Notes under the pieces: model-generated
What the model was told of the DNA's origin: nothing
Seen by the model: only the letters and a program-made list of their open reading frames with translations
The model's database searches: none
Assembly: GCA_002269645.1 (NCBI GenBank)
Contig: NIVC01005260.1
Location: 1 to 15,129 of the forward strand
DNA length: 15,129 nt
From: Macrostomum lignano
Taxonomy: Eukaryota
Direction of reading: 5' to 3'
Part shown: positions 887-14,567 of the stretch, one piece after another
How positions within the stretch are numbered: the first letter of the stretch is position 1
Layout of the letters: each line of letters begins with the position of its first letter
Position numbers and translations under genes: made by a program

Positions 887-3800
887 TAGCGCAAAAAGAC
901 CGACTGTATGGTTTACTGGAGTTTGGGCCATAGACAACAAAGCTTCAAACAGGCCTGGGGATTAAGAGGGCAGAAAGGAAGGAGATGTGGAGAGAGACAG
1001 AGAATACAACGTGAATTGTTACATTCCATTAACAATGGAGAACCAGAGCTCCATCGTGCAAGAAACAGTGAATGTGTCTGGTGGTTTTCAGGTGAATGTT
1101 CGGTGTATTGTTTATTATGAACAACTGTACTTTTAACAGTTGCAATCTGTGATGAGGTTTACGGTCACTTAATTTTAAGCAGTGCCCAAAGATGGTTCCT
1201 TTCAGACTTCCTGAGAGGAACTAATAGTACCTATCAAAACAAACAGAATGGATCGTCAGGTGCATTTCTAGTATAATTAATACAAAAGTACATTTACTAG
1301 TGAAAGGGTGCTTCAATAATAAGGAATATAAAATGAAACAAAAGTTCACAACGCTTAAAAAGCTTCCAAAAATCCTCCTCAGTTCCAAAGCAGCTCAGTT
1401 TGGCAACAACCCAGCTTTTTGCGCAGTCAAAAATGACAAATATGGATTTGACAGTTGGTCGGCAAATAGCGTACATGCGTGTGGGCGTGTTTCTCAGCAT
1501 CAAGTGGCGGCTGCACAGGCTCTGGAACGCTATTTGCTTGCTGTATGATCGTATTAAAGGAGAGAGAGACAAGTTGTAGTTAGTAGGGCTGGTTAGACAG
1601 TTTTGCATGTAAAAAAATTGGGTAAATAATTACTTGTCCATATAGATGGACAGCTGAAGCAAAAAGGAGCTGCATTTTCAGATCGTAAAAATTGTTAACA
1701 CACTATAGAGATGTGACCACCTGTAATATAAGCTCGATAAACTTTTTGTAATCATCCATACAGAAAATACATACTTGAAACTTATTTTAAAATTGTTCGT
1801 TTTTAAGCTTAGTGATCCATTCAATACACCCAGAAGTATTATTGCTCTCTTCCACCAGTAAATAAATCACTCACTCAGTAAATAAATAAATAAAACAGTC
1901 ATATCGATTTATTGTACAACAGCTTACCACAATTTTGCTGGATATGATGTCGATATAAGACCCCAGCACGATGACGAAATCTAGCACGTTCCATAGGTCG
2001 CTGAAGTAGTTCTAAAATGTGAGAATAGGAGCCTCGCTATAAATTAACACATCATGATATTGGAGCACTAAACGTTGCTCGCAGGGGCGTCGGCACCGGG
2101 GGGACAGAGGGGACAGGACCCCCGAGTAAAAGCTTTGTCCCCCCACCCAACCTTGTGACCCGTTATGTAAATCAATAGTTTTGCTTCAGGGTGCTTGCGG
2201 CGCTAGAATGAGTGCTGGTGGCGCTAGAATGAGTGCTTGCGGCGCTAGAATGAGTGCTTGCGGCGCTAGAATGAGTGCTTGCGGCGCTAGAATGAGTGCT
2301 GGCGGCGCTAGAATGAGTGTTTGCGGCGCTAGAATGAGTGCTTGCGGCGCTAGAATGAGTGCTTGCGGCGCTAGAATGAGTGCTTGCGGCGCTAGAATGA
2401 GTGCTTGCGGCGCTAGAATGAGTGCTTGCGGCGCTAGAATGAGTGCTTGCGGCGCTAGAATGAGTGCCTGCAGTGCCAAAATATCTGCTGCGCTAAATGT
2501 GCGCTGACAACACAGATCATGTACATGTAAAGTAGAATTCTTGGCTGTGTCTACCCGACCATAAAATTTATGCCGACGCCCCTGTTCTCACCGAGAAGAA
2601 ATTAAGAAGGTAACAAATAAACAAAAATCAGTGATGTTGGTTAAGGTAGAGGTCACGAGGACGTGACCCGCGTCACTGAGAAAAACAGGTTGACAATATT
2701 ACAGCACCAATCACACTGCATGAGGTGGCTATGGATTAGCAGAGGGCTGGAGCACTAGCTTGACCTGCATGTATGCTCTACTTACCCTAAAGCTAAATGC
2801 CACCAGCTTCAAAATGAACTCGATGGTGAAGATGGCGGTGAAGAGCATGTTGAAATAGTCAAGCACCGAGCTGTACGTTTCAGGCTGGCCTTCAAACTGC
2901 AATGATTGACATATGAACTCGTGTGAAAAATTTGAATAGAAATTATTAGCCTGGAATACAAATATACAAAGAAAGTAAGACACAAAGAGTCGAGCGACAT
3001 AGCAAATGTATAGTGGCCCTTCCACACCAAAAATAAGTCTGTAACAAAAAACCAAAATTGCACAACTTCGAAGAAAACTTGTCTTCTTAACGGCAAAATG
3101 GTCCTCCCTAGGTAAAGCCACTTCCCTAGGTCGTATGAAGCGACTTCCCTAGGTCGTATAAAGCGACCTCCCTAGGTCGTATGAAGCGACTTCCCTAGGT
3201 CGTATAAAGCGACCTCCCTAGGTCGTATGAAGCGACCTCTCAATGTATATAAAGCGACTTCCCTAGGTCGTATGAAGCGACCTCCCTAGGTCGTATGAAG
3301 CGACCTCTCAATGTATATAAAGCGACTTCCCAAGGTCGTATGAAGCGACCTCCCTATGTATATAAAGCCACTTCCCTAGGTCGAATGAAGCCACTTCCCT
3401 AGGTCGTATAAAGCGACCTCCCTAGGTCGCATATGAAGCAACTTTCACGACTAGATGTGGGCACCCAAAGAGCTTTTCATGCACTATTTATTCACTTCAA
3501 AAAAAGAATTTTATGAAACCGAGAGAAACATGACAGCAGGTAATATATGGAGGCTTCAGATAGGAAGTTAACCGGTACTAACCTTCATAGCCAGCGCAAT
3601 CGTGTTGAGCATGATCAGCAGAAAAATTCCGTATTCGAATGGCGTCGAGGTGACAAACCACCAGATCTTGTACTGCAACCGTCGTTGCGGTATGTAGCGC
3701 CGCACTGGCTTGGCTTTTAACGCAAATTCGATGCACTTTCGCTGCATAAGAAAGAAGGAAGATCGGGATAATAAATTTAGGGTGTACTACTTGCATTAGC

Positions 3801-6800
3801 ACGCAAAACAAGTGTACGCTGGTGTGTACTCGTACGGATATTGAGAAATCAGTCTGCTAATACATAATACATACTTGATTTTTATGGAAATTTTTAATTT
3901 TGAAGAGTCAAGCTCGTACTGAAGGTCGTTAAATAATTTTCTCTTTTGTTTAGCTAACATGTACTTACTATTATAGTAACTAAAAACGTATATTTCAAAG
4001 CAACATTCATACTGATTGTACAAAAAGAAAAGAGCATGTGAGCAAAGTAAAAAAGTGAAATAATTGTTAACCAATTGCGATTTGACACAATAAATTTGAG
4101 CTGTGAGTAACGATTGTTGCTTCTAAAAGCAGTCTCACTGACACAAAACAACAATCTAAGGTGATCCAGTCGATCAAGTGCCAACACTTTGCAAAAGGAA
4201 CCTGACATACTTTGTACTACATGTGTTGTCGACCCTGTGAATTGGTCGGTCGGTCTGAACTGGATAAAGGAATGTAAAATGAGAAGCGCATGGAGCTGCA
4301 GGGGACGGCGACTTGGCGCAGATTAGCGGGGAACGAACCAATTTAATCCGGGGACCAACTGAGATCCGCACGCCCGACCCGAAAATCCAATCCCCATGCA
4401 GTTAGGAGCCTCATCGACCATTAAGGTTGGCGAATTAAATGTACTATTGCTCCACCGAGAGAGACTGGAATGAATTTTTGTCAAAGTACTTTTACCGTTC
4501 GATAGTTTTTAAGTCTGACAAAAAATATCGGTGTTCAATTATGAACAGAACTACAAGGGTAAATTTACCAGCCCTTGAATTGCACAGAAACAGCTATAGC
4601 TACAGATATTTATGCTCGAACAAGAGTAAAGGGCTCTGCAAACTTCTGCGGAACATCACTACAACACTAGCCTAGTATCACAAGAGCAAGAAAAAATACT
4701 GATTTCCTAAATACATAAATTTGGCCAACAGATGTCATTCGTGTCTCATATCAGCCTCTCCTCGTTTGGCGGCCGGAGAATGTCCTGCATGCTTTGCTGT
4801 CCCGACTTGCCGCTGCCCAGCTCCCGATCGCTGGGCTTATAAACGCCTGTGTCCTTTCGTCGGTCGCGTATCACTTTAAAAGCTAAGCCAGCTGCAGTTC
4901 CGGCTAGCAGAACAAGTAGCAAACCCACTACTAGGCCGACTACCAGACGACTGTCTGCGGCTGGAGCCTGAGTTCCAGCCTCCACAGGCTCCGTTGTCTG
5001 AGCAGTCTGTGGCATCGTTGTCAGAGGCGGAGTCGTCGTTTGCAGAGTCGTCGCTAGCGGAGTCGTCGCTGGCGGAGTCGTCGCTGGCGGAGTCGAACAG
5101 TTGGCGCCGCTGTAACCGTCGGTACAGTTACAGGAGAAAGTCTCCAACGAAGCGATGCTAGTGCAGAATCCGTGCCCTGAGCAGGGCTCCAGGCCGATCG
5201 TGCTTGTGTTGCAGAAATCTCTAGCCTTTAAGCAAAAGTCGCCCCCGTAGCCGGTAGCGGTGCAGTTGCAGCTCGAGTGGAGGTTCCACTGAAGCCGGGG
5301 CAAGCAGCTGCCCCCGTTTGCACAGATGCAGGGGTCCTCATGGCAGCCAGCCAAAACACCGGAGCCATTCAATAGCTGCACATTCGTCACCTCGGCAATG
5401 GCATTATCCGAGGACTCAGTGACCGTCGCATTGGCAAGGCAACCTCTTAGTCCGTCGGTGCCATTAGTACCACCAAAGGTCATCACAGTCCAGTTGAATA
5501 TCGCCGTTAATGCTGTCGTCGGATCTGCAAATACACGTAGCAGTTCAGCTCCATCCAAGCTGACAGTCACGTCGCTAGCATTGGCATCGAGTCTGATGCT
5601 GACAGAGTGCCAGTATCCGTCAGTAAGATTAACAGCAGCTTGGTTGCGACTGCCATTCGAAGGCCAATCAGCAGTCAGATGCTGGAAAGTTATGCCGAGG
5701 ACCAGTTGCAGCATGCTGTTGGTTTCATTGTCCGTCGACGGTGCGTACAAGCCCCAGATGGACCAAGCCGGGTGTGACGCTCGAAACTCGAATGTTGCGA
5801 CAGTTTCAATCGGGATTGCCGAAGCATTTTGGCGCGTCAGATTTGCAACGCCACTGACGTTAAATGTTGCGACATCGGCCGAAGCATTGGAAATTGGCTG
5901 TGTAACCAGAAACAGCACGCCGAAGCAGAAATACAGAAAAAATCGTTGAAGAAACATGCTTCTGCGCCTAACAATTCAACCGAAGCAAAAAAAGTCGTCA
6001 GAGCTATAGTTGCACGAAACAGTTGTTACGAATCTATCGCTTCAGTAGGCCGTAGTTGAGGTAAGCTATATAATCGCTTTCAAACTTGCTCGTTTACTCT
6101 CATGCTTAATTAGACGCAGGCTGAAGCATAATAATAGCTGCAATAGCCACGAAGTTCCACGAGTGTCGTATGTCAGCACGGGCACGATAGAGAGTAGTAG
6201 TAGTACGTCTCTAGTCACGGAGGAAATGCGCCACACTGGTCGCCTTTTATAAGGTACGCTCGCCGTGGCCTTTCTCGCGAACAGCTAGCTGCTTTCCTTT
6301 GTATACACTTCTCTGTATACTCACTATAGCAGCCTGGCCTTCTCTCCAGACACTCACTAATGCAGGGCAGAACTGACTGGACGGATTTGGCGAGCGAATC
6401 TCTCTTGCCAAAAGTTCTGTTGGTCATGCAGTACTCATGTCGTTTTTTCTTAATGCTTCTTTTTATTTTCACTCCTGCTTCGCAGAGAACACGGCCCACA
6501 GGGAAAGTTTTCTCTCGTTTTAGCTCATGTAAAATCGTTTTTATATCGGGCTGACGGACGCGGTCGATTGGGCTGAGTTAGCTGAGCAGAGCCGGGAGGT
6601 AGGGCTGAGAAGCTTTATGGGTAGAGAAAGGGAGTTGGCCTGGAGGGTTATTGGATGAAAGAACTGCAGCTTAGGGCGTGGAGATGTATGAGCTCATTCG
6701 CTTTCCTCCACTCTCTCCTGCCCTAACCGTCTCACCTGCTGAGCACATCCAGATGGTTTCTGTCAGACTTAACTGCGCACGACAATAGGCTCTATAATTT

Positions 6801-9800
6801 CGCGGGGAGTGCTCGTTTCTCACCCTCAGGCCAGCGTGCATGGTCGCTTGGCGTGCATACATGAGCATACATACGGAATGAGGCGCTTTGCATTCAGTGG
6901 CAGACTGAACTTGAGTAAGCAAATGATAGAAGAGATAATTATTTTCAGTGAAAAGGATGACAGTTTTCTGTTGCAACCACTGCCTATTCTTTACTCCTTA
7001 ATATCTGTATAATATGACATTAAGTAATTAAAGCTATCAAGCAAGATAAGGAGTCAGAGGCAAGCACGAGGGACTGTCAAAACAGTTGTGCATATACACG
7101 ATAATGCAGACACGTTATTAGGAGGTGGGGCAGCTATGTACATGAATGGGGCAGTGGGGCTTCACCGCATTTTAACTGCTTTAACCCGTGCCCTAATTTA
7201 ACAGCGCACATGTATAAACATTCTTGCTTGCCTAGATTGACTAAGGGACTGGAGAGTGGCATAATTTTAACCATTGTCAATTATAGAAGCTTGTCTAGCA
7301 GATGTATCAAAGTCGAAGCCTTCTGAGGCAGCGCTCGCTACTTCAACGATCGCTATGCACAGCAAAGTCGGGCACCCCAAACGGTCGATTCGACTGCGCA
7401 GTGATCGGTGCCGGACACAACGGCCTGGTGGCTGCCGCCTACTTGGCTGGCGCTGGTAAGAAAGTCTGCGTACTTGAACGGCGTCATGTGATCGGTGGCG
7501 CTGCCGTAACTGAAGAGATCGTGCCCGGGTTCAAGTTCAGCCGCTGCTCCTACGTGCTGAGCCTGCTGCGCCGAAGGTGATGGAAGACCTTCAGCTAGAA
7601 CGGCATGGCTTGGTCGTGTACACTCGCGACCCCAGCTCCTATACGCCTCTACTGGAGCCCGGGTCGAAAACTGGAGCTCAGTCACTTCTACTGGGCCGCG
7701 ACCACGCGCGGACGCACAGGTCCATCGCCGCATTTTCGCCTCGCGACGCCGACCAGTTTGTCCGCTACGAAGAGCAGATGGGCCGCCTGGCAGCCAGTCT
7801 GGAGCCGCTGCTCGATAACCCGCCGTTCAACTTGCACCACCTGCTGGCATCAAGCGGACTTCGCGCGAAAGCAAGGGAACTCGAACGGGCTAGACCGCTT
7901 TACCGGATGGCGTCTCAGCTCGGACCGCAGCTGCTGCAGCTCTACGAGCTGCTCACTGCGCCAACTTCTCGAATTCTGGATCGCTGGTTCGAGAGCGAGC
8001 CTTTGAAGGCCACTCTGGCCACGGACAGCGTCATCGGAGCAATGATTTCGCCGGACACGCCTGGCAGCGGCTACGTACTACTGCATCACGTGATGGGCGG
8101 AGTGAACAATATCCCAGGAGCATGGGGCTTTGTCCACGGCGGTATGGGATCTGTTAGCAAAGCTATTGCCGAAAGTGCTCAAGCAAGAGGTATGAAACTA
8201 CAGGAACCAATTGCTATTAACGAGTAAACTTTGAAGCTCAATTTGATTTAAAACGCTTAAATCGTTTCTCCTCAGGTGCCAAGATATTCACCGATGCTCC
8301 GGTCTCTCATATCAAAGTAGTAAATGGCAAAACAGAAGGCGTTGTTCTTGCCGACGGCAGCGAAGTAGATGCGCCCGTGGTGTTGTCGAACGCCACGCCG
8401 AAGGTGACGTTCGAAAACCTGCTGCCGCCAGACTCTCTGCCCGAGGACGATTTTCTGGCCAGCGTACGGCGAATCGACTACGCCTCGCCAGTGACGAAAA
8501 TCAACGTGGCCGTTTCCCGACTGCCAAACTTTCTCGCCGATCCCAATCCGGTGTCGGGCGACTGCCCGGACCATTTTCACGGCACCATTCACCTCAACTC
8601 CGACAGCTGCGCCATGATTGATACGGCCTACCGGGCCTGTCAGCAGGGCGGCTACGCTGATAGGCCGGTCATCGAGATGACTGTGCCCTCGTCGCTTGAC
8701 GATAGTCTAGCTCCAAAAGGTACGCGGAAGATTGAGCATTTCTATACTAATATACTGCAGGTCTGGCTGGTTGACTGTCTCCAGAACTTGTTCTAGAAGC
8801 GTCCCAGAGGACTGTGCAAGAGAAGTTAGGCTTATCTGAAACGCCTCCCAAATGATTCAACACTGCTCATAGTTGACTTTATGAACCATGGAAACCACGT
8901 TTTCAATTAGCTTTTAATGCGTCTTCTCTCTGTAGGGGGTTTACCGGATAATCCTCGTCCTAATTACCAATAGGTGCACACGTGGTCCAGCTATTTACTC
9001 AGTACACACCAAAGCTGCTGCATGGCAAGCGGTGGACGCAGGAGGACAAGGACCGCTACACCAGGACCGTGTTCAAATGCATCGACGACTACGCGCCCGG
9101 TTTCTCCGCCTCGGTTGTTGGCAGCGACGTGCTGACTCCGCAGGACCTAGAAGAGACATTCGGTCTCACCGGAGGCAACATCTTCCACGGCGGGATGTCG
9201 CTTGACCAGCTTTACTTCATGCGGCCAACCCCCGAGTACTGCGACTATCGCAGTCCGATCGGCGGCCTCTACCTGTGCGGCAGCGGGGCTCACCCTGGTG
9301 GCGGCGTCATGGGTGCACCTGGACGGCTGTGCGCTTTGGAAGTGCTCAGAGACAGCTAAATGATGATCACTATTGAAGCCATTCATTTTGAATTCAATAG
9401 TTTCCTCTATTATTGAACCTCTATTTCTATTGGAATGGATTTTTTCGGTAATTATAGCAATATTTAGAATTATTCTATTTTTCAATAAGCAGATGTTAGA
9501 ATTCGAAATTTATTTAATAATACATTTTAATAATCACTATACGAACGTAGAAGCAGTCTCAAAAATCCTTGTCTGAAATCGGTAATATTTTTATAGCTGA
9601 TCCTGTAGGGTCAATACCAAACTACATCATAAGAATCAGCTGTTCTTGTCTTCAAAATGAATCAGTGAATGAATGTACCTTATCAGCCTAAAAATAAATC
9701 ATACAAAACAACAGGTCTGCAATGACGCAGACTACAGTTCTTTCTTCTCAGCAGCGTCCTCGCTGTCAGGCTGCTTGGCGGCCTTCTTCGCCGCTTCGTC

Positions 9801-12400
9801 GGTGCCTTGAAGCGTCGGCAGCTCGTCGTACTCGCCCGGCTTGTGCGCCGCCTCGCAGGCGGAGTTGCACCGGGCGAACTCCTCTGCCAGCTCGTGCTCG
9901 CTGACGCACTCGCGCCGGCAAACCTGCAGCTTGCTGAGCCGCTTTGCGCGCATGATTTCTTGGAAAGCCTCCTCGGCTTCGGCGCGCAGCTTCGGATCCT
10001 CCGTGTTCATCAGCATCATGCGGTCGATCTCAGGGCCGGCCTTGGGGTCCTTTTTCATGAAGTCCATGTTGACGTCATCGGCGTCCGGGTAGAAGGCCAG
10101 AGCTGGAAGCGACAGCTGCGTGAGCAGCACCAGCAGCACCGGGAGGGTTTCTCTTCTAAAAGCCGGCTGCATTTCCAAGACAGACGGGTATATCAAACTT
10201 TCAAATCGGGTAGCTCGCATGTTGGACCGGTTTTCAGCATTTTTATACCGGCTTGCCAGCTGATCTCAGTGTCCAATTGCAACGCGACCCGTCATGCCAC
10301 ATCAACACAGAGCAGGTGCGCCGTTCGATAGGAGAACTTTGGGACATTTAGTTTTCCCAATTGCAGTCTGTTCAAACACGCTGGTTCTCTATTTGATTTC
10401 AGTTGCTTCGATTCTGTCACAATCCAGCGCATTGTTCAACCATAAAGGTAAACACACGCCGATTGTGTTTAAACAGTTCACTTCGTATTACTTGACATTG
10501 AGCGAGAGTTATTTATGCAAGCCACCCATAGTCCATAGGGATTTCAAGCTGCCAGATTTTAAGCAGAGCCACCATTGACTTAGAAGCCTTAGCGCTCGAT
10601 AATATCAGCATTTTCCAAGTCAATTTTTTCGATTTTCTAACTCAGTATACTTGAAAACATCTGTTTCCAGGACTTTGATAAGCAATTCGGCGCTCACGAT
10701 TTATACTAATAGCTTCCTCAAAATGTATGTTTAGTCTTCTACATAATGTGCAGCCAGTTCTTCATATCATCTACAAAGCCGCTCCCCATTTCGGTTGGGC
10801 TGGATAGGCTTTTCATAGCGGCCATAGTCTATTGCCAGCCTTGCCGGACTGGAGGGGCTTTTCATAGCGGCCATAGTCTATGGCCAGCCTTGCCGGACTG
10901 GAGGGGCTTTTCATAGCGGCCATAGTCTAAGGCCAGCCTTGCCGGGCGTGGAGCTATTTATAGAACTCTATGTTCGGCAAGGAACGGAGTTTTTTATTGC
11001 TTCGGCGCGAAGAACAAAAAAACGACGCGGGCTAATAACTAACCATGGAAAAACTGCTCACCTGATTCTTGTCCAACTCGCAATTCCTGTACTCTTGCTC
11101 GCCCTCCTGTTGAAAGGTGACAATGACAAAGCCAACGAAGATGTTGACCATAAAGAAGGCGATCACGATGATGAAAGCGACGTAAAACAGCGCCATTGGG
11201 GGCCGATTGTTGTAGGTGCCACCCTGGCCTCCTTATCTGAGTCGATGACATGTACAACAGCCTGCAGTAGATAGAGAGAAATTAGTTTTCTTAATGCTCT
11301 ACTGTCAGTAGCTCGTAGGCTTGTAGGATGAAAAAAGTAATATAGAACTCTACTAACCCGGGCCAGCCCTCGAATGTGGAGGTGGCAAATAGAGACAGCA
11401 TGGCGTGAGCCACGTCATCAAAATTGAGATCCTCATTCTCCCATTCTCTCTCCTTCATCACGGGCTTGGAGATGTCGTTGTCTTTGTAGAAAATGAAGTA
11501 GCCCTGGCACTCTGCTTCCGTAGACTTGGATCCGTCGTTGCACTTTCTGAACTTGCCCTTGAACAGCTGAACACCGATGACGGCGAACATGAACTCGAGC
11601 AGGAAGGTGACCAGCATGATGTTGCCGATGCTCTTCACCGCTACGATCACGCATTGTACGACGTGCTGCGGATTGGGGATTGCAGATTGGGGTTTTGCTG
11701 CTTTTAGAAGAATGCAGGGAGGGGTCGCAAACCTCAACCAAGCTGGAAGGGTAACATACAGTTTAGAAATTGTTTCACAAAGTCCCGTTTTGTCGTGAGT
11801 TTGAATTTGAACTTTTTTTTAGCAATTGCGAGTTTAATAGCGCGATTACTCAGCCTCACCTTGAGCCCCTTGGCCCTGTTGATGGCGCGCAGCGGCCGCA
11901 ACACTCGCAGAACTCGAAGAATTTTCACGACCGAAAACGTGTCCGAACTGAAAATTGAAGTACGAGATGAATTTATCAATACGTGAGACACAAGTTCACT
12001 TTTTTTAATTTAAAATCTTTTTAAAAGTACATTATGCACACGCTTTGAACTTTAGAATGCATCAGGTAGCTAAAGCATCTACCTGTGACTATGCAAAAAC
12101 TGCTGCAAACAAGAACGGATCAAAATTTCCGCCACCACAGGCTAAAAACGTTTGATTTGATTTCTGCTCAGTTCACGAAATTGCAATCGCTGGCAATTCT
12201 TCATGTAACACTTTTTCTCTCATTCACTGGCAAAGCAAACAAAGGTGTATAGCATTCCGAAGTCCACAGCTTTGAGAACTGCGGTGCACTCACGGCGAGA
12301 ATAGGGACATTAAAGCTACAGACACAACCAGCAGGTCCAACAGGTTGAATGTGGACCTGCAGAAGGAGCCTTTGTGCAGGATCACACCGTAAGTGACCAC
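1..12400 (-). CDS. Cav1: Partial multi-exon gene for L-type voltage-gated calcium channel alpha-1 subunit (Cav1; CACNA1C/D-like), repeat III to IVS4; runs off both window edges
   Basis: Exons join at GT-AG sites to give [28 protein letters not shown]...[28 protein letters not shown]...TFEGWPG...[16 protein letters not shown]...[18 protein letters not shown]...[18 protein letters not shown]...ISISFFRLFR. These are Cav1-type IIIS3-IVS4 motifs. Four 1-nt indels must be corrected to keep the frame. Confidence 0.97.
322..392. repeat. (GA)n microsatellite flanked by G-runs
   Basis: Direct reading. Confidence 0.97.
486..881. repeat. Imperfect (GA)n / GGA polypurine tract, about 400 nt
   Basis: Essentially only G and A; pure (GA)n ends with a G-enriched core. 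Confidence 0.97.
1475..1540 (-). CDS. Candidate in-frame cassette exon (66 nt, [22 protein letters not shown]) in the Cav1 IVS3-S4 linker
   Basis: TACTAAC branch point, CT-rich tract and TACAG acceptor; CAT|GTACGC donor (same hexamer as the PYROXD2 donor at 8720); phase 0/0 with no stop codon. No transcript evidence is available. Confidence 0.5.
1928..2011 (-). CDS. Cav1: Cav1 exon (84 nt), IVS3
   Basis: TTTTAG|AAC acceptor and GTG|GTAAGC donor; [28 protein letters not shown]. Confidence 0.95.
2082..2584. mobile_element. MITE-like non-autonomous DNA transposon (503 bp) with perfect 14-bp terminal inverted repeats
   Basis: CAGGGGCGTCGGCA (2082-2095) and TGCCGACGCCCCTG (2571-2584); no coding capacity; no intact TSD found. 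Confidence 0.7.
2191..2467. repeat. 21-bp minisatellite, 13 copies (GTGCTTGCGGCGCTAGAATGA)
   Basis: Near-identical units; explains the ACGARMS and ALILAPQ repeat ORFs. Confidence 0.97.
2786..2896 (-). CDS. Cav1: Cav1 exon (111 nt), IVS2
   Basis: TTGCAG|TTT acceptor and AGG|GTAAGT donor; [37 protein letters not shown]. Confidence 0.96.
3103..3440. repeat. 22-24 bp minisatellite, about 14 copies plus a partial one (CTTCCCTAGGTCGTATGAAGCGA)
   Basis: Direct reading; variant unit CCTCTCAATGTATATAAAGCGA recurs at 3236 and 3304. Confidence 0.95.
3583..3741 (-). CDS. Cav1: Cav1 exon (159 nt), III-IV linker and IVS1
   Basis: TGCAG|CGA acceptor and AAG|GTTAGT donor; [53 protein letters not shown]; not shown in the supplied ORF track. 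Confidence 0.96.
4746..5957 (-). CDS. crb: Intronless short Crumbs-family type I membrane protein, 403 aa (signal peptide, 1 LamG, 2 EGF, Thr/Pro stalk, TM, Crumbs cytoplasmic tail)
   Basis: Hydrophobic N-terminus. LamG motifs [11 protein letters not shown] and GLRGCL. EGF cores CANGGSC...[13 protein letters not shown] and CSGHGFC...[37 protein letters not shown]. Tail GVYKPSDRE...[11 protein letters not shown] matches the Crumbs FERM-binding GxYxPS..E and PDZ-binding ERLI motifs. Confidence 0.9.
   Translation of the reverse strand: MFLQRFFLYFCFGVLFLVTQPISNASADVATFNVSGVANLTRQNASAIPIETVATFEFRASHPAWSIWGLYAPSTDNETNSMLQLVLGITFQHLTADWPSNGSRNQAAVNLTDGYWHSVSIRLDANASDVTVSLDGAELLRVFADPTTALTAIFNWTVMTFGGTNGTDGLRGCLANATVTESSDNAIAEVTNVQLLNGSGVLAGCHEDPCICANGGSCLPRLQWNLHSSCNCTATGYGGDFCLKARDFCNTSTIGLEPCSGHGFCTSIASLETFSCNCTDGYSGANCSTPPATTPPATTPLATTLQTTTPPLTTMPQTAQTTEPVEAGTQAPAADSRLVVGLVVGLLLVLLAGTAAGLAFKVIRDRRKDTGVYKPSDRELGSGKSGQQSMQDILRPPNEERLI
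6244..6251 (-). promoter_or_regulatory. Putative TATA box of the mini-Crumbs gene
   Basis: Minus-strand TATAAAAG with an Inr-like CATTTCC about 24 nt downstream; about 290 nt upstream of the ATG. Confidence 0.35.
7302..9359 (+). CDS. PYROXD2: Pyridine nucleotide-disulfide oxidoreductase domain-containing protein 2 (FAD-dependent, phytoene desaturase-like fold), about 572 aa; join(7302..8189,8276..8719,8974..9359)
   Basis: [15 protein letters not shown] dinucleotide-binding motif, [70 protein letters not shown]. Two phase-1 GT-AG introns (8190-8275, 8720-8973). One missing C at about 7571 (LLR-PKVMED). Arg-rich N-terminus without acidic residues suggests mitochondrial targeting. Confidence 0.95.
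9509..9514 (-). promoter_or_regulatory. Putative polyadenylation signal (AATAAA) for the KKEL gene
   Basis: Plus-strand TTTATT, about 220 nt past the stop at 9732. Confidence 0.4.
9693..9698 (+). promoter_or_regulatory. Putative polyadenylation signal (AATAAA) for PYROXD2
   Basis: First canonical plus-strand AATAAA seen after the stop at 9359. Confidence 0.35.
9732..10172 (-). CDS. Intronless orphan secretory-pathway protein (146 aa from ATG 10172; 162 aa from ATG 10220) with signal peptide, twin CX3C motif and C-terminal KKEL
   Basis: GC-rich coding-like ORF flanked by AT-rich DNA. Signal-like [35 protein letters not shown]-x12-CNSAC, ends EKKEL-stop. TATA box upstream and AATAAA downstream on the same strand. 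Confidence 0.75.
   Translation of the reverse strand: MQPAFRRETLPVLLVLLTQLSLPALAFYPDADDVNMDFMKKDPKAGPEIDRMMLMNTEDPKLRAEAEEAFQEIMRAKRLSKLQVCRRECVSEHELAEEFARCNSACEAAHKPGEYDELPTLQGTDEAAKKAAKQPDSEDAAEKKEL
10240..10247 (-). promoter_or_regulatory. Putative TATA box of the KKEL gene
   Basis: Minus-strand GGTATAAAAATG. Standard spacing puts the start site near 10220, favouring ATG 10172 as the start codon. Confidence 0.45.
10807..10953. repeat. 49-bp tandem repeat, 3 copies
   Basis: GGCTTTTCATAGCGGCCATAGTCTA... starts at 10807, 10856 and 10905. Confidence 0.93.
11062..11261 (-). CDS. Cav1: Cav1 exon, IIIS6 and start of III-IV linker (200 nt as written; 202 needed for frame)
   Basis: CTGCAG acceptor and CAG|GTGAGC donor. 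Reads LLYMS / IDSDKE / [56 protein letters not shown] across three frames, implying 1-nt deletions near 11247 and 11229. Confidence 0.93.
11358..11665 (-). CDS. Cav1: Cav1 exon (308 nt), IIIS5 and pore loop including the selectivity-filter Glu
   Basis: CCGCAG|CAC acceptor and GG|GTTAGT donor; [39 protein letters not shown]...[10 protein letters not shown]. Confidence 0.97.
11860..11947 (-). CDS. Cav1: Cav1 exon (88 nt), IIIS4 voltage sensor
   Basis: TTTTCAG acceptor and AAG|GTGAGG donor; [29 protein letters not shown]; phase 2 to 0. Confidence 0.97.
12294..12400 (-). CDS. Cav1: Cav1 exon (107 nt), IIIS2-S3 linker and IIIS3
   Basis: CAG|GTG acceptor and CC|GTGAGT donor; translates [35 protein letters not shown](P); phase 0 to 2. 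Confidence 0.95.
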
Positions 12401-12708
12401 CTGTGCATTGTATTGTGCATTTGGTTGTATCAATAGTTGTTAGATGGCTAACTATACTAAACTCAATAATGTAGCTACTCAACAAACTAATAAAGAAACA
12501 AAAGTAATTATTAAACATAATAATTTATCACTAGGCACAAAAAGGACGACATAGATTGAACAAAATTGAGTGCATAAGTAATGTAATGTTTAGCGAAAAT
12601 GTGGGTTACATGTAGGTTAATGATGACTAAAAAATAATATGTTACTTTACACCAACCTGTGACCTTAGTTTAAAATTAATTAGAAACAAAAATGTCCTCA
12701 GGCTAGAC

Positions 12709-14567
12709 ATGGGATTCGTCAGACTAGAATTGAGATTCCTGAGCCTATAGAGTTAGGATTCTAGATTGTAGTCTAGACTAGATTGTAGTCTCGAGTTGGG
12801 ATTCCTCAGACTGGAATTGGATTCCTGAGACTATAGAGTTGAGATTCTAGATTGTAGTCTAGACTAGATTGTAGTCTCGACTAGATTGTAGTCTCGAGTT
12901 GGGATTCCTCAGACTGGAATTGGGATTCCTGAGACTATAGAGTTGAGATTCTAGATTGTAGTCTAGACTAGATTGTAGTCTCGACTAGATTGTAGTCTCG
13001 AGTTGGGATTCCTCAGACTGGAATTGGGATTCCTGAGACTATAGAGTTGAGATTCTAGATTGTAGTCTAGACTAGATTGTAGTCTCGACTAGATTGTAGT
13101 CTCGAGTTGGGATTCCTCAGACTGGAATTGGGATTCCTGAGACTATAGAGTTGAGATTCTAGATTGTAGTCTAGACTAGATTGTAGTCTCGACTAGATTG
13201 TAGTCTCGAGTTGGGATTCCTCAGACTGGAATTGGATTCCTGAGACTATAGAGTTGAGATTCTAGATTGTAGTCTAGACTAGATTGTAGTCTCGACTAGA
13301 TTGTAGTCTCGAGTTGGGATTCCTCAGACTGGAATTGGGATTCCTGAGACTATAGAGTTGAGATTCTAGATTGTAGTCTCGACTAGATTGTAGTCTCGAG
13401 TTGGGATTCCTCAGACTGGAATTGGATTCCTGAGACTATAGAGTTAGGATTCTAGATTGTAGTCTAGACTAGATTGTAGTCTCGAGTTGGGATTCCTCAG
13501 ACTGGAATTGGGATTCCTGAGACTATAGAGTTGAGATTCTAGATTGTAGTCTAGACTAGATTGTAGTCTCGACTAGATTGTAGTCTCGAGTTGGGATTCC
13601 TCAGACTGGAATTGGGATTCCTGAGACTATAGAGTTGAGATTCTAGATTGTAGTCTAGACTAGATTGTAGTCTCGACTAGATTGTAGTCTCGAGTTGGGA
13701 TTCCTCAGACTGGAATTGGGATTCCTGAGACTATAGAGTTGAGATTCTAGATTGTAGTCTAGACTAGATTGTAGTCTCGACTAGATTGTAGTCTCGAGTT
13801 GGGATTCCTCAGACTGGAATTGGGATTCCTGAGACTATAGAGTTGAGATTCTAGATTGTAGTCTAGACTAGATTGTAGTCTCGACTAGATTGTAGTCTCG
13901 AGTTGGGATTCCTCAGACTGGAATTGGATTCCTGAGACTATAGAGTTGAGATTCTAGATTGTAGTCTAGACTAGATTGTAGTCTCGACTAGATTGTAGTC
14001 TCGAGTTGGGATTCCTCAGACTGGAATTGGGATTCCTGAGACTATAGAGTTGAGATTCTAGATTGTAGTCTAGAACTAGATTGTAGTCTCGACTAGATTG
14101 TAGTCTCGAGTTGGGATTCCTCAGACTGGAATTGGGATTCCTGAGACTATAGAGTTGAGATTCTAGATTGTAGTCTCGACTAGATTGTAGTCTCGAGTTG
14201 GGATTCCTCAGACTGGAATTGGGATCCTGAGACTATAGAGTGAGATTCTAGATTGTAGTCTAGACTAGATTGTAGTCTCGACTAGATTGTAGTCTCGAGT
14301 TGGGATTCCTCAGACTGGAATTGGGATTCCTGAGACTATAGAGTTGAGATTCTAGATTGTAGTCTCGACTAGATTGTAGTCTCGAGTTGGGATTCCTCAG
14401 ACTGGAATTGGGATTCCTGAGACTATAGAGTTGAGATTCTAGATTGTAGTCTCGACTAGATTGTAGTCTCGAGTTGGATTCCTCAGACTGGAATTGGGAT
14501 TCCTGAGACTATAGAGTTAGGATTCTAGATTGTAGTCTAGCCTAGATTGTAGTCTCGAGTTGGGATT
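12709..14567. repeat. Composite satellite array, about 19 units of 104 bp (87-bp variants)
   Basis: Unit = GTTGGGATTCCTCAGACTGGA + ATTGGGATTCCTGAGACTATAGA + GTTGAGATT + 2-3 copies of the 17-mer CTAGATTGTAGTCT(A/C)GA. Confidence 0.97.

Follow-up and report, generated by a model that had tools for sequence, protein, structure and literature searches.

A gene nested in a calcium-channel intron of Macrostomum lignano encodes a predicted twin CX3C hairpin protein with a KDEL-like C-terminus

Results

We analysed a stretch of 15,129 nucleotides (henceforth referred to as 'the window') that comprises contig NIVC01005260.1 of assembly GCA_002269645.1, the Mlig_3_7 genome of the flatworm Macrostomum lignano, with respect to a gene on its minus strand which an initial annotation, made from the sequence alone, had described as encoding an orphan protein that is either secreted or resides in the lumen of the endoplasmic reticulum (ER). 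Our results suggest that this orphan is a soluble resident of the ER lumen whose core is a hairpin stapled by disulfides, a reading to which, on the combined grounds of sequence features, structure models and analogy, we give roughly even chances. ER residence is the best reading because the KDEL-like end of the protein is more informative than the competing convertase-type motif and because this end is preceded by a flexible acidic tail. The finding is real and had been correctly described, and is moderately interesting at most.

A secretory-type protein with a twin CX3C core

The orphan coding sequence (CDS) is a single exon of 146 codons and a TAG stop (9732..10172; all features of the orphan gene given here are on the minus strand), as indicated by its translation, its coding score, its GC content at third codon positions and the calling of a gene in four loci. 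The ATG lies at 10172-10170 and the stop codon at 9734-9732, and the initial coordinates correspond exactly to the CDS plus stop codon. The signal peptide, acidic segment, RAKR, twin CX3C motif, tail and KKEL that had been listed for the protein are all present in the translation. Residues 1-26 (10095..10172) form, by eye and by hydropathy, a predicted cleavable signal peptide, with RR in the n-region, LPVLLVLL as the h-region and a c-region that has Pro at -4 and A-L-A at -3 to -1, after which the cut is predicted. The hydropathy profile contains this one hydrophobic stretch only, at the N-terminus, and no further membrane span. Residues 27-59 (9996..10094) are Met-rich (Met 36, 39, 52, 53 and 55) as well as acidic (9 Asp or Glu) and are modelled with low confidence; hydrophobic moments are 0.38-0.48 for this segment and for the helix at 60-78. 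RAKR, a motif of the R-x-K-R convertase type, occupies residues 75-78 (9939..9950), 6 residues before the first Cys of the twin CX3C core C85-RRE-C89-x12-C102-NSA-C106 (9855..9920). The core holds the only four Cys of the 146-residue protein (85, 89, 102 and 106), and four randomly placed Cys would form a twin CX3C by chance with P = 8e-4. It is followed by an acidic Ala/Lys tail, residues 110-142 (9747..9845), predicted to be disordered from its composition and a predicted local distance difference test (pLDDT) score of ~50, and by the C-terminal KKEL, residues 143-146 (9735..9746). The mature protein would have 120 amino acids, a mass of 13.6 kDa, 29 Asp/Glu against 19 Lys/Arg and an isoelectric point (pI) of 4.7, and the orphan contains no N-glycosylation sequon.

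The structure was modelled with AlphaFold2 from the single sequence, at full length and as a fragment comprising residues 59-117. The model of the full-length protein has a low overall quality (pLDDT 63) and is confident for residues 60-110 (block means 75-89), where it consists of a helix at 60-92, a turn at 93-95 and a helix at 96-109; RAKR lies within the continuous first helix. For the fragment model the pLDDT is 87 overall, with means of 91-96 in helices 81-92 and 96-109, which bear the Cys. The hairpin is common to both models, which differ as to RAKR: it is inside a helix and buried in the full-length model and at a helix break and exposed in the fragment model. The predicted helix-turn-helix (helices 81-92 and 96-109, turn 93-95; 9846..9932; pLDDT 87-96 in two models) is of the alpha-hairpinin type, and the initial proposal that the twin CX3C motif forms a helical hairpin is therefore upheld at the level of prediction. 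By analogy with known hairpins of this kind, we infer the disulfide pairs C85-C106 and C89-C102.

In both Foldseek runs against the PDB, the only compact matches with a low root-mean-square deviation (rmsd) were plant CX3C-Xn-CX3C hairpins. These local matches were BWI-2c (2lqx), Luffin P1 (6o3s and 2l37), the Jug r 2 leader (9q1l and 7lvf) and the Ara h 1 leader (7lxk), with an rmsd of 0.9-3.1 Å over 28-34 residues and a target TM (template modelling) score of 0.41-0.79; small Tim proteins were absent from the PDB matches of both runs. The orphan hairpin is anionic (pI 5.5) and its loop, SEHEL, contains no basic residue, properties that do not fit an antimicrobial or trypsin-inhibitor hairpin.

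Two candidate sorting signals that point apart

An acidic disordered tail before the retrieval motif is common to many ER residents. Since 4.9% of shuffled versions of the mature protein contain R-x-[KR]-R, RAKR alone is a weak signal, and since only 0.17% of them end in [KRH]-x-E-L, the KDEL-like end is the more informative of the two. In HeLa cells, a reporter ending in A-K-X-E-L localised to the ER with any residue but Pro at position -3, and all KXEL variants interacted with the receptor ERD21 in the reporter screen (Raykhel et al. 2007, PMC2140024). KKEL falls in this experimentally extended K-X-E-L set (X not Pro), which makes it, as initially suggested, a plausible signal for the KDEL receptor. 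KKEL and RAKR do indeed point to two different fates, as had also been noted.

Gene structure, coding evidence and transcription

The orphan region has 63% GC within an AT-rich intron, and because GC-rich DNA opens long open reading frames (ORFs) in several frames, we scored the frames with a codon model derived from the neighbouring genes. The orphan frame scored +38.9 bits, compared with -7.6 bits for the antisense open frame and less than -20 bits for the others, and its GC fractions at codon positions 1/2/3 are 0.68/0.38/0.81. The antisense ORF (9807-10331, plus strand, 174 amino acids) was rejected as a gene, given its poor codon score and its being open only through GC-richness.

The orphan frame is closed by an in-frame stop 15 codons upstream of its first ATG (10218..10220), which sits 16 codons upstream of, and in frame with, the Met at 10172. 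This upstream ATG is used in three of the four deposited models, each of 162 amino acids, and is probably at or before the transcription start. A putative TATA box, TATAAAAA (10240..10247), was read from the sequence 27 nt upstream of ATG 10220 and 75 nt upstream of ATG 10172, and from its position transcription is expected to start at ~10220-10214. The transcript-based model of the fourth copy (PAA85652.1, 'hypothetical protein BOX15_Mlig032429g2, partial') is open at its 5' end and begins at the equivalent of 10199. Because of the TATA-predicted start and this transcript-based model, the Met at 10172 is the likelier initiator; the mature protein is identical for either start codon. Trans-splicing at the AG just upstream was considered and rejected, that AG being included in the transcript-based partial model. 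Overlapping the TATA box is an out-of-frame ATG at 10238-10240 (minus strand), which opens a short frame of 16 codons (ATGCTGAAAACC...TGA). This ATG probably precedes the transcription start and is then of no consequence; if transcripts start further 5', it would open an upstream ORF. A candidate AATAAA polyadenylation signal (9509..9514) is present ~220 nt past the stop codon. The gene appears, as judged from these elements, to be compact and intronless, with its own TATA promoter and poly(A) signal, and the strong coding signature with TATA upstream and AATAAA downstream supports a real, compact signal-peptide gene.

The deposited annotation calls the gene in four of four genomic copies and enters the product as a hypothetical protein. 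Since, as its authors describe, the M. lignano annotation derives solely from RNA-seq transcripts that were cut at ends mapped by experiment and in which ORFs were then called by TransDecoder (PMC5730564), transcription is indirectly supported and the gene is apparently transcribed. A look-up of expression data by the locus tag Mlig032429 found nothing in the supplements of M. lignano papers that were searched, and a full-text literature search for the tag was likewise empty.

Relatives and genomic copies

Pfam hmmscan to E = 10 recognised no family, whether the query was the whole protein, its mature form or the hairpin fragment, and NCBIfam gave none for the orphan protein. Against PDB sequences, only mS25 and designed helical repeats were returned, with non-significant E-values and as matches of composition. 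When 5.8 billion proteins were searched by word index, with the whole protein as query at E 0.01 and its mature form at E 10, the gene's own copies alone were returned, and an exhaustive phmmer search of 1.84 billion representatives gave only the gene's own cluster. One apparent large homologue, UPI0007A2CBB4 (P0003; 1620 amino acids; window ~4746-12400), was rejected as an older read-through gene model: this chimera fuses channel exons, the orphan ORF, the antisense PYROXD2 gene and the laminin-G/EGF gene described below, and pollutes the protein cluster. No sequence from another flatworm turned up in the protein libraries searched, whose coverage of flatworms is uncertain. As initially stated, then, no family could be recognised for the protein. 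Orphan status holds within the libraries searched, and relatives could lie below the detection limit for a short, compositionally biased protein; the gene is apparently restricted to the species or lineage and confined so far to the M. lignano genome.

Within that genome, four near-identical copies of the orphan gene were found, in the window and in the sister loci L001, L002 and L004 (99-100% identical). The CDS is identical in the window, L001 and L002, the flanks of which differ by 1-3%, and the L004 CDS carries 5 differences. Three of these are synonymous and two non-synonymous, one in the signal peptide (Q2R) and one in the tail (D136G), both outside the hairpin; the observed ratio of synonymous to non-synonymous changes is 3:2, compared with an expected 1.1:3.9. 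Divergence between copies is 1.0% in the CDS and ~1.2-1.5% in the flanks, so that the CDS is not clearly more conserved. In a comparison over 3600-12600, L004 is 100% identical to the window over 3600-8400 (~4.8 kb) and 1-3% diverged from ~9300 on, a mosaic that points to exchange between duplicated regions, by gene conversion or recombination, or else to an assembly chimera. Because the copies are near-identical and mosaic, they are too weak as a test of constraint: they say little on selection and nothing on conservation of the motifs.

The host gene and other genes in its intron

The orphan gene lies on the same strand as its host, a voltage-gated calcium channel gene whose exons are on the window minus strand. 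Pfam Ion_trans matches were obtained at 11291-11737 and within ORF 2729-3121 (minus strand), and tblastn located channel exons at 12293-12400, 11860-11958, 11339-11710 and 11062-11229 (minus strand); in the longer sister locus L001, the channel gene model gives a 1973-amino acid product with Ion_trans, GPHH and Ca_chan_IQ domains. According to tblastn and the L001 gene model, the exon at 11062..11229 (minus strand), which encodes S6 of domain III, is the last one before the orphan-bearing intron. The next recognisable host exon downstream of the intron (2768..2902, minus strand; borders approximate) was placed by the Ion_trans match within ORF 2729-3121. The intron thus spans ~8 kb, from the exon ending at 11062 to the exon near 2900, and holds 3 nested genes. 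Besides the orphan, these are a multi-exon gene for a PYROXD2-like FAD/NAD(P) oxidoreductase (7302-9359, plus strand, antisense to the channel; identified by Pfam; 572 amino acids in the sister loci) and an intronless gene for a 403-amino acid single-pass membrane protein on the channel strand (4746-5957, minus strand; a weak laminin-G match and an EGF domain in Pfam). The PYROXD2-like gene and the orphan gene are convergent, with their stop codons ~370 bp apart, and the 3' untranslated regions may overlap or abut. As read from its translation, the laminin-G/EGF protein combines a signal peptide, numerous N-glycosylation sequons and a Thr/Pro-rich stalk with a single membrane span and a short tail that ends in ERLI.

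The initial annotation had drawn a hint from the calcium-channel setting, which we consider to have no meaning: because the host intron also carries two unrelated genes, location in a calcium-channel gene is not evidence on function, and a functional tie between orphan and channel was rejected as unsupported. Neither the Rfam scan nor the tRNA scan of the window returned a match. The window also contains a ~1.9-kb satellite in a calcium-channel intron (12710-14567; 104-bp and 87-bp units, 95-99% matches), which recurs in the sister loci with different copy numbers, and further tandem arrays at 322-392, 486-881, 2191-2471, 3113-3444 and 10800-10953, the array types being a (GA)n microsatellite of ~200 units, a 21-bp unit repeated 13 times, 23/68-bp units and a 49-bp unit repeated three times. 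Such arrays yield long spurious ORFs, e.g. 236-940 and 2181-2507.

Discussion

If the orphan is an ER-lumen resident, the signal peptide would direct its co-translational entry into the ER, and residues 1-26 would be removed after Ala26. The oxidising machinery of the ER would then pair C85 with C106 and C89 with C102, stapling helices 81-92 and 96-109 into a rigid alpha-hairpin. Subsequently, the flexible acidic tail would offer KKEL to the KDEL receptor in the cis-Golgi, and escaped molecules would be returned, as the human reporter data lead one to expect. The disulfides would be structural rather than redox-active, and RAKR would be incidental, or met by convertases only in those molecules that escape retrieval. 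Our best guess at the job of such a protein is that of a small client-specific escort or scaffold, in which the Met-rich amphipathic N-terminal segment and helix 60-78 may provide a binding surface and the hairpin a stable core. The chaperone, redox or Ca2+-binding activity put forward in the initial annotation did not find support, CX3C not being the redox-active CXXC and the acidity being moderate. A redox role is unlikely because the disulfides of CX3C hairpins are structural in the known examples; Ca2+ buffering is possible and, at 24% Asp/Glu, weakly grounded.

Several observations weigh against ER residence or the grounds on which it is proposed. KKEL fails the PROSITE pattern [KRHQSA]-[DENQ]-E-L, with its Lys at -3 lying outside [DENQ], and the support for K-X-E-L comes from human cells and a reporter only, in a screen whose interaction assay has been criticised in a later structural paper (PMC8248988). 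No natural ER protein with a KKEL tail was found in the literature searched. RAKR is situated exactly where a cut would free the hairpin with natural borders, and the fragment model has a helix break at K77-L79, at the RAKR site. Both models were, moreover, computed from a single sequence, and the Foldseek E-values (1.7-9) are not significant. The ratio of non-synonymous to synonymous changes per site (pN/pS) between the copies is 0.19 (P = 0.08), a figure that is based on only 5 changes. Transcription is deduced from how the annotation was constructed and not from reads, and no orthologues were found, the only sequences in which the Cys residues, RAKR and KKEL can be compared being the 99-100% identical copies of the one genome.

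The leading alternative, which we judge unlikely and yet the one to be taken most seriously, is that the orphan is a secreted pro-protein, which leaves the ER and is cut by a furin/PC-type convertase after R78 (RAKR|LS). The product would be the C-terminal 68-residue piece or, after additional cuts at K129-K130 and K143-K144, a stapled hairpin of ~50 residues that acts outside the cell, and KKEL would be a chance ending or another dibasic site. Spaced as it is 6 residues before Cys85, the R-x-K-R motif would mark a natural N-terminal border of the hairpin module, the acidic N-terminal part resembles a pro-region, and all of the structural look-alikes are peptides freed from precursors by proteolysis; whether the convertase could reach its site depends on which model is followed, K77-L79 being in the helix break of the fragment model whereas the full-length model buries RAKR in the continuous helix 60-92. 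Set against this are the frequency with which RAKR-type sites arise by chance (~5% of shuffles, as opposed to 0.17% for the KDEL-like end) and the observation that K-X-E-L tails held the reporter in the ER. The precursor also has neither an amidation Gly nor repeated modules, and its hairpin is anionic, unlike the antimicrobial hairpinins, with a loop (SEHEL) that lacks the basic P1 residue of trypsin inhibitors. A compromise between the two fates, which we regard as improbable, is that the protein is stored in the ER via a weak KKEL signal and released when retrieval is saturated or ER Ca2+ falls, whereupon a late-Golgi cut at RAKR would yield an active hairpin peptide. KKEL is non-canonical and may well be a weak signal, and both motifs are intact in four of four copies, but these copies are too alike for the retention of both to mean anything, and the proposal is pure inference, with no datum that speaks specifically for it.

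An equally improbable explanation, in our estimate, is that the ORF belongs to a young or non-functional transcript and that its motifs have no cellular role. It would account for the failure of the searches to find a homologue anywhere and for a divergence between copies that is not clearly lower in the CDS (1.0%) than in its flanks (~1.2-1.5%); the orphan also lies in an intron of its host on the same strand, so host pre-mRNA could explain some of the RNA-seq signal. A non-functional ORF would not, however, be expected to show the strong codon-position bias and the best-frame score, nor the 3:2 ratio of synonymous to non-synonymous changes where 1.1:3.9 is expected, and it is hard for a random intronic ORF to combine a TATA box and poly(A) signal with a well-formed signal peptide, twin CX3C and KDEL-like end. 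Less probable still is a mitochondrial intermembrane-space protein of the small-Tim kind, starting at 10220, with MRATRF...RRE and the hydrophobic stretch serving as a bipartite presequence. Twin CX3C motifs spaced by 12 residues are the hallmark of small Tims, and the upstream in-frame Met adds two Arg, but the same extension carries three Glu, small Tims have no N-terminal targeting peptide, and both the TATA position and the transcript-based model put the 5' end past ATG 10220; nor was there a PF02953 match even at E = 10, or a small Tim among the Foldseek matches. We attach the lowest probability of all, close to negligible, to KKEL being a dilysine (KKXX) COPI signal on the cytosolic side of a membrane-anchored protein. 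With its Lys at -3 and -4, KKEL matches KKXX exactly, but that motif functions on cytosolic tails only; here the sole hydrophobic segment is N-terminal, with flanks (RR before, D-rich after) that orient the C-terminal part to the lumen, and the disulfide-forming Cys argue for the lumen, an oxidising compartment, making a cytosolic C-terminus topologically unlikely.

Should the orphan prove to be an ER resident, the twin-CX3C disulfide hairpin, so far described in the small Tim chaperones of mitochondria and in defence and storage peptides of plants, would also be used in the animal ER lumen, and K-K-E-L, which so far rests on an artificial reporter, would have a natural example as a retrieval signal. 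Our literature search for twin CX3C together with a signal peptide returned only mitochondrial papers; both the twin-CX3C helical hairpin and the KDEL-like tail are known elements, and a description of the two in combination was not found in the literature searched. A bolder proposal, which we hold to be quite unlikely, is that the orphan is the first animal ER-lumenal twin-CX3C hairpin of the alpha-hairpinin/small-Tim type, the fold having arisen independently in a third compartment, and that it could have a dual fate: a weak KKEL would keep it in the ER until retrieval fails upon ER stress or Ca2+ loss, whereupon it would be exported and cleaved at RAKR, yielding an anionic hairpin peptide that acts as a signal. 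M. lignano is tractable by transgenesis, and KKEL-dependent localisation and RAKR cleavage are directly testable. The wider importance is limited unless orthologues or a function appear, the gene being confined to the genome of one species and having no link to a phenotype.

Comparison with known systems

The systems with which the orphan can be compared each share part of its architecture. Small Tim chaperones (Tim8/9/10/13, PF02953) are likewise small and acidic and form a two-disulfide helical hairpin from a twin CX3C with a similar spacer; that spacer is roughly 11-16 residues in small Tims, and the 12 residues of the orphan fall inside this range. The likeness is, however, one of motif only, the orphan giving no match to the PF02953 profile, and in place of Mia40-dependent import it has an ER-type cleavable signal and a tail that ends in KKEL. 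The proprotein-convertase substrates, i.e. prohormones and pro-peptides with R-x-K/R-R, resemble the orphan in that its RAKR separates an acidic N-terminal part from a C-terminal part stabilised by Cys. In contrast to these substrates, the orphan has a single site and no amidation signal, and its KDEL-like end would keep it from the compartment in which these enzymes act.

The closest structural parallel is with the plant alpha-hairpinins and vicilin-leader peptides, with which the orphan shares the Cys motif; alpha-hairpinins are defined by C1X3C2-Xn-C3X3C4 with n = 4-20 (PMC11591084), and n = 12 in the orphan is within this range. Its predicted helix-loop-helix superposes on theirs at 0.9-3.1 Å, and in both cases the hairpin is part of a longer precursor that has a signal peptide. 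The orphan differs from them in having no sequence homology, an animal host, a single module and no vicilin/cupin domain, in its anionic hairpin (pI 5.5) without a basic reactive-loop residue, and in its long acidic tail with a KDEL-like end, which argues for retention over release. With the small soluble ER residents ERp27 (KVEL) and ERp18 (EDEL), the orphan has in common a signal peptide and the absence of a membrane span, and in these proteins a C-terminal x-x-E-L outside the PROSITE pattern still gives ER localisation (PMC2140024). Whereas ERp27 and ERp18 have thioredoxin folds and belong to recognisable families, the orphan has neither, and its location in the ER is predicted.

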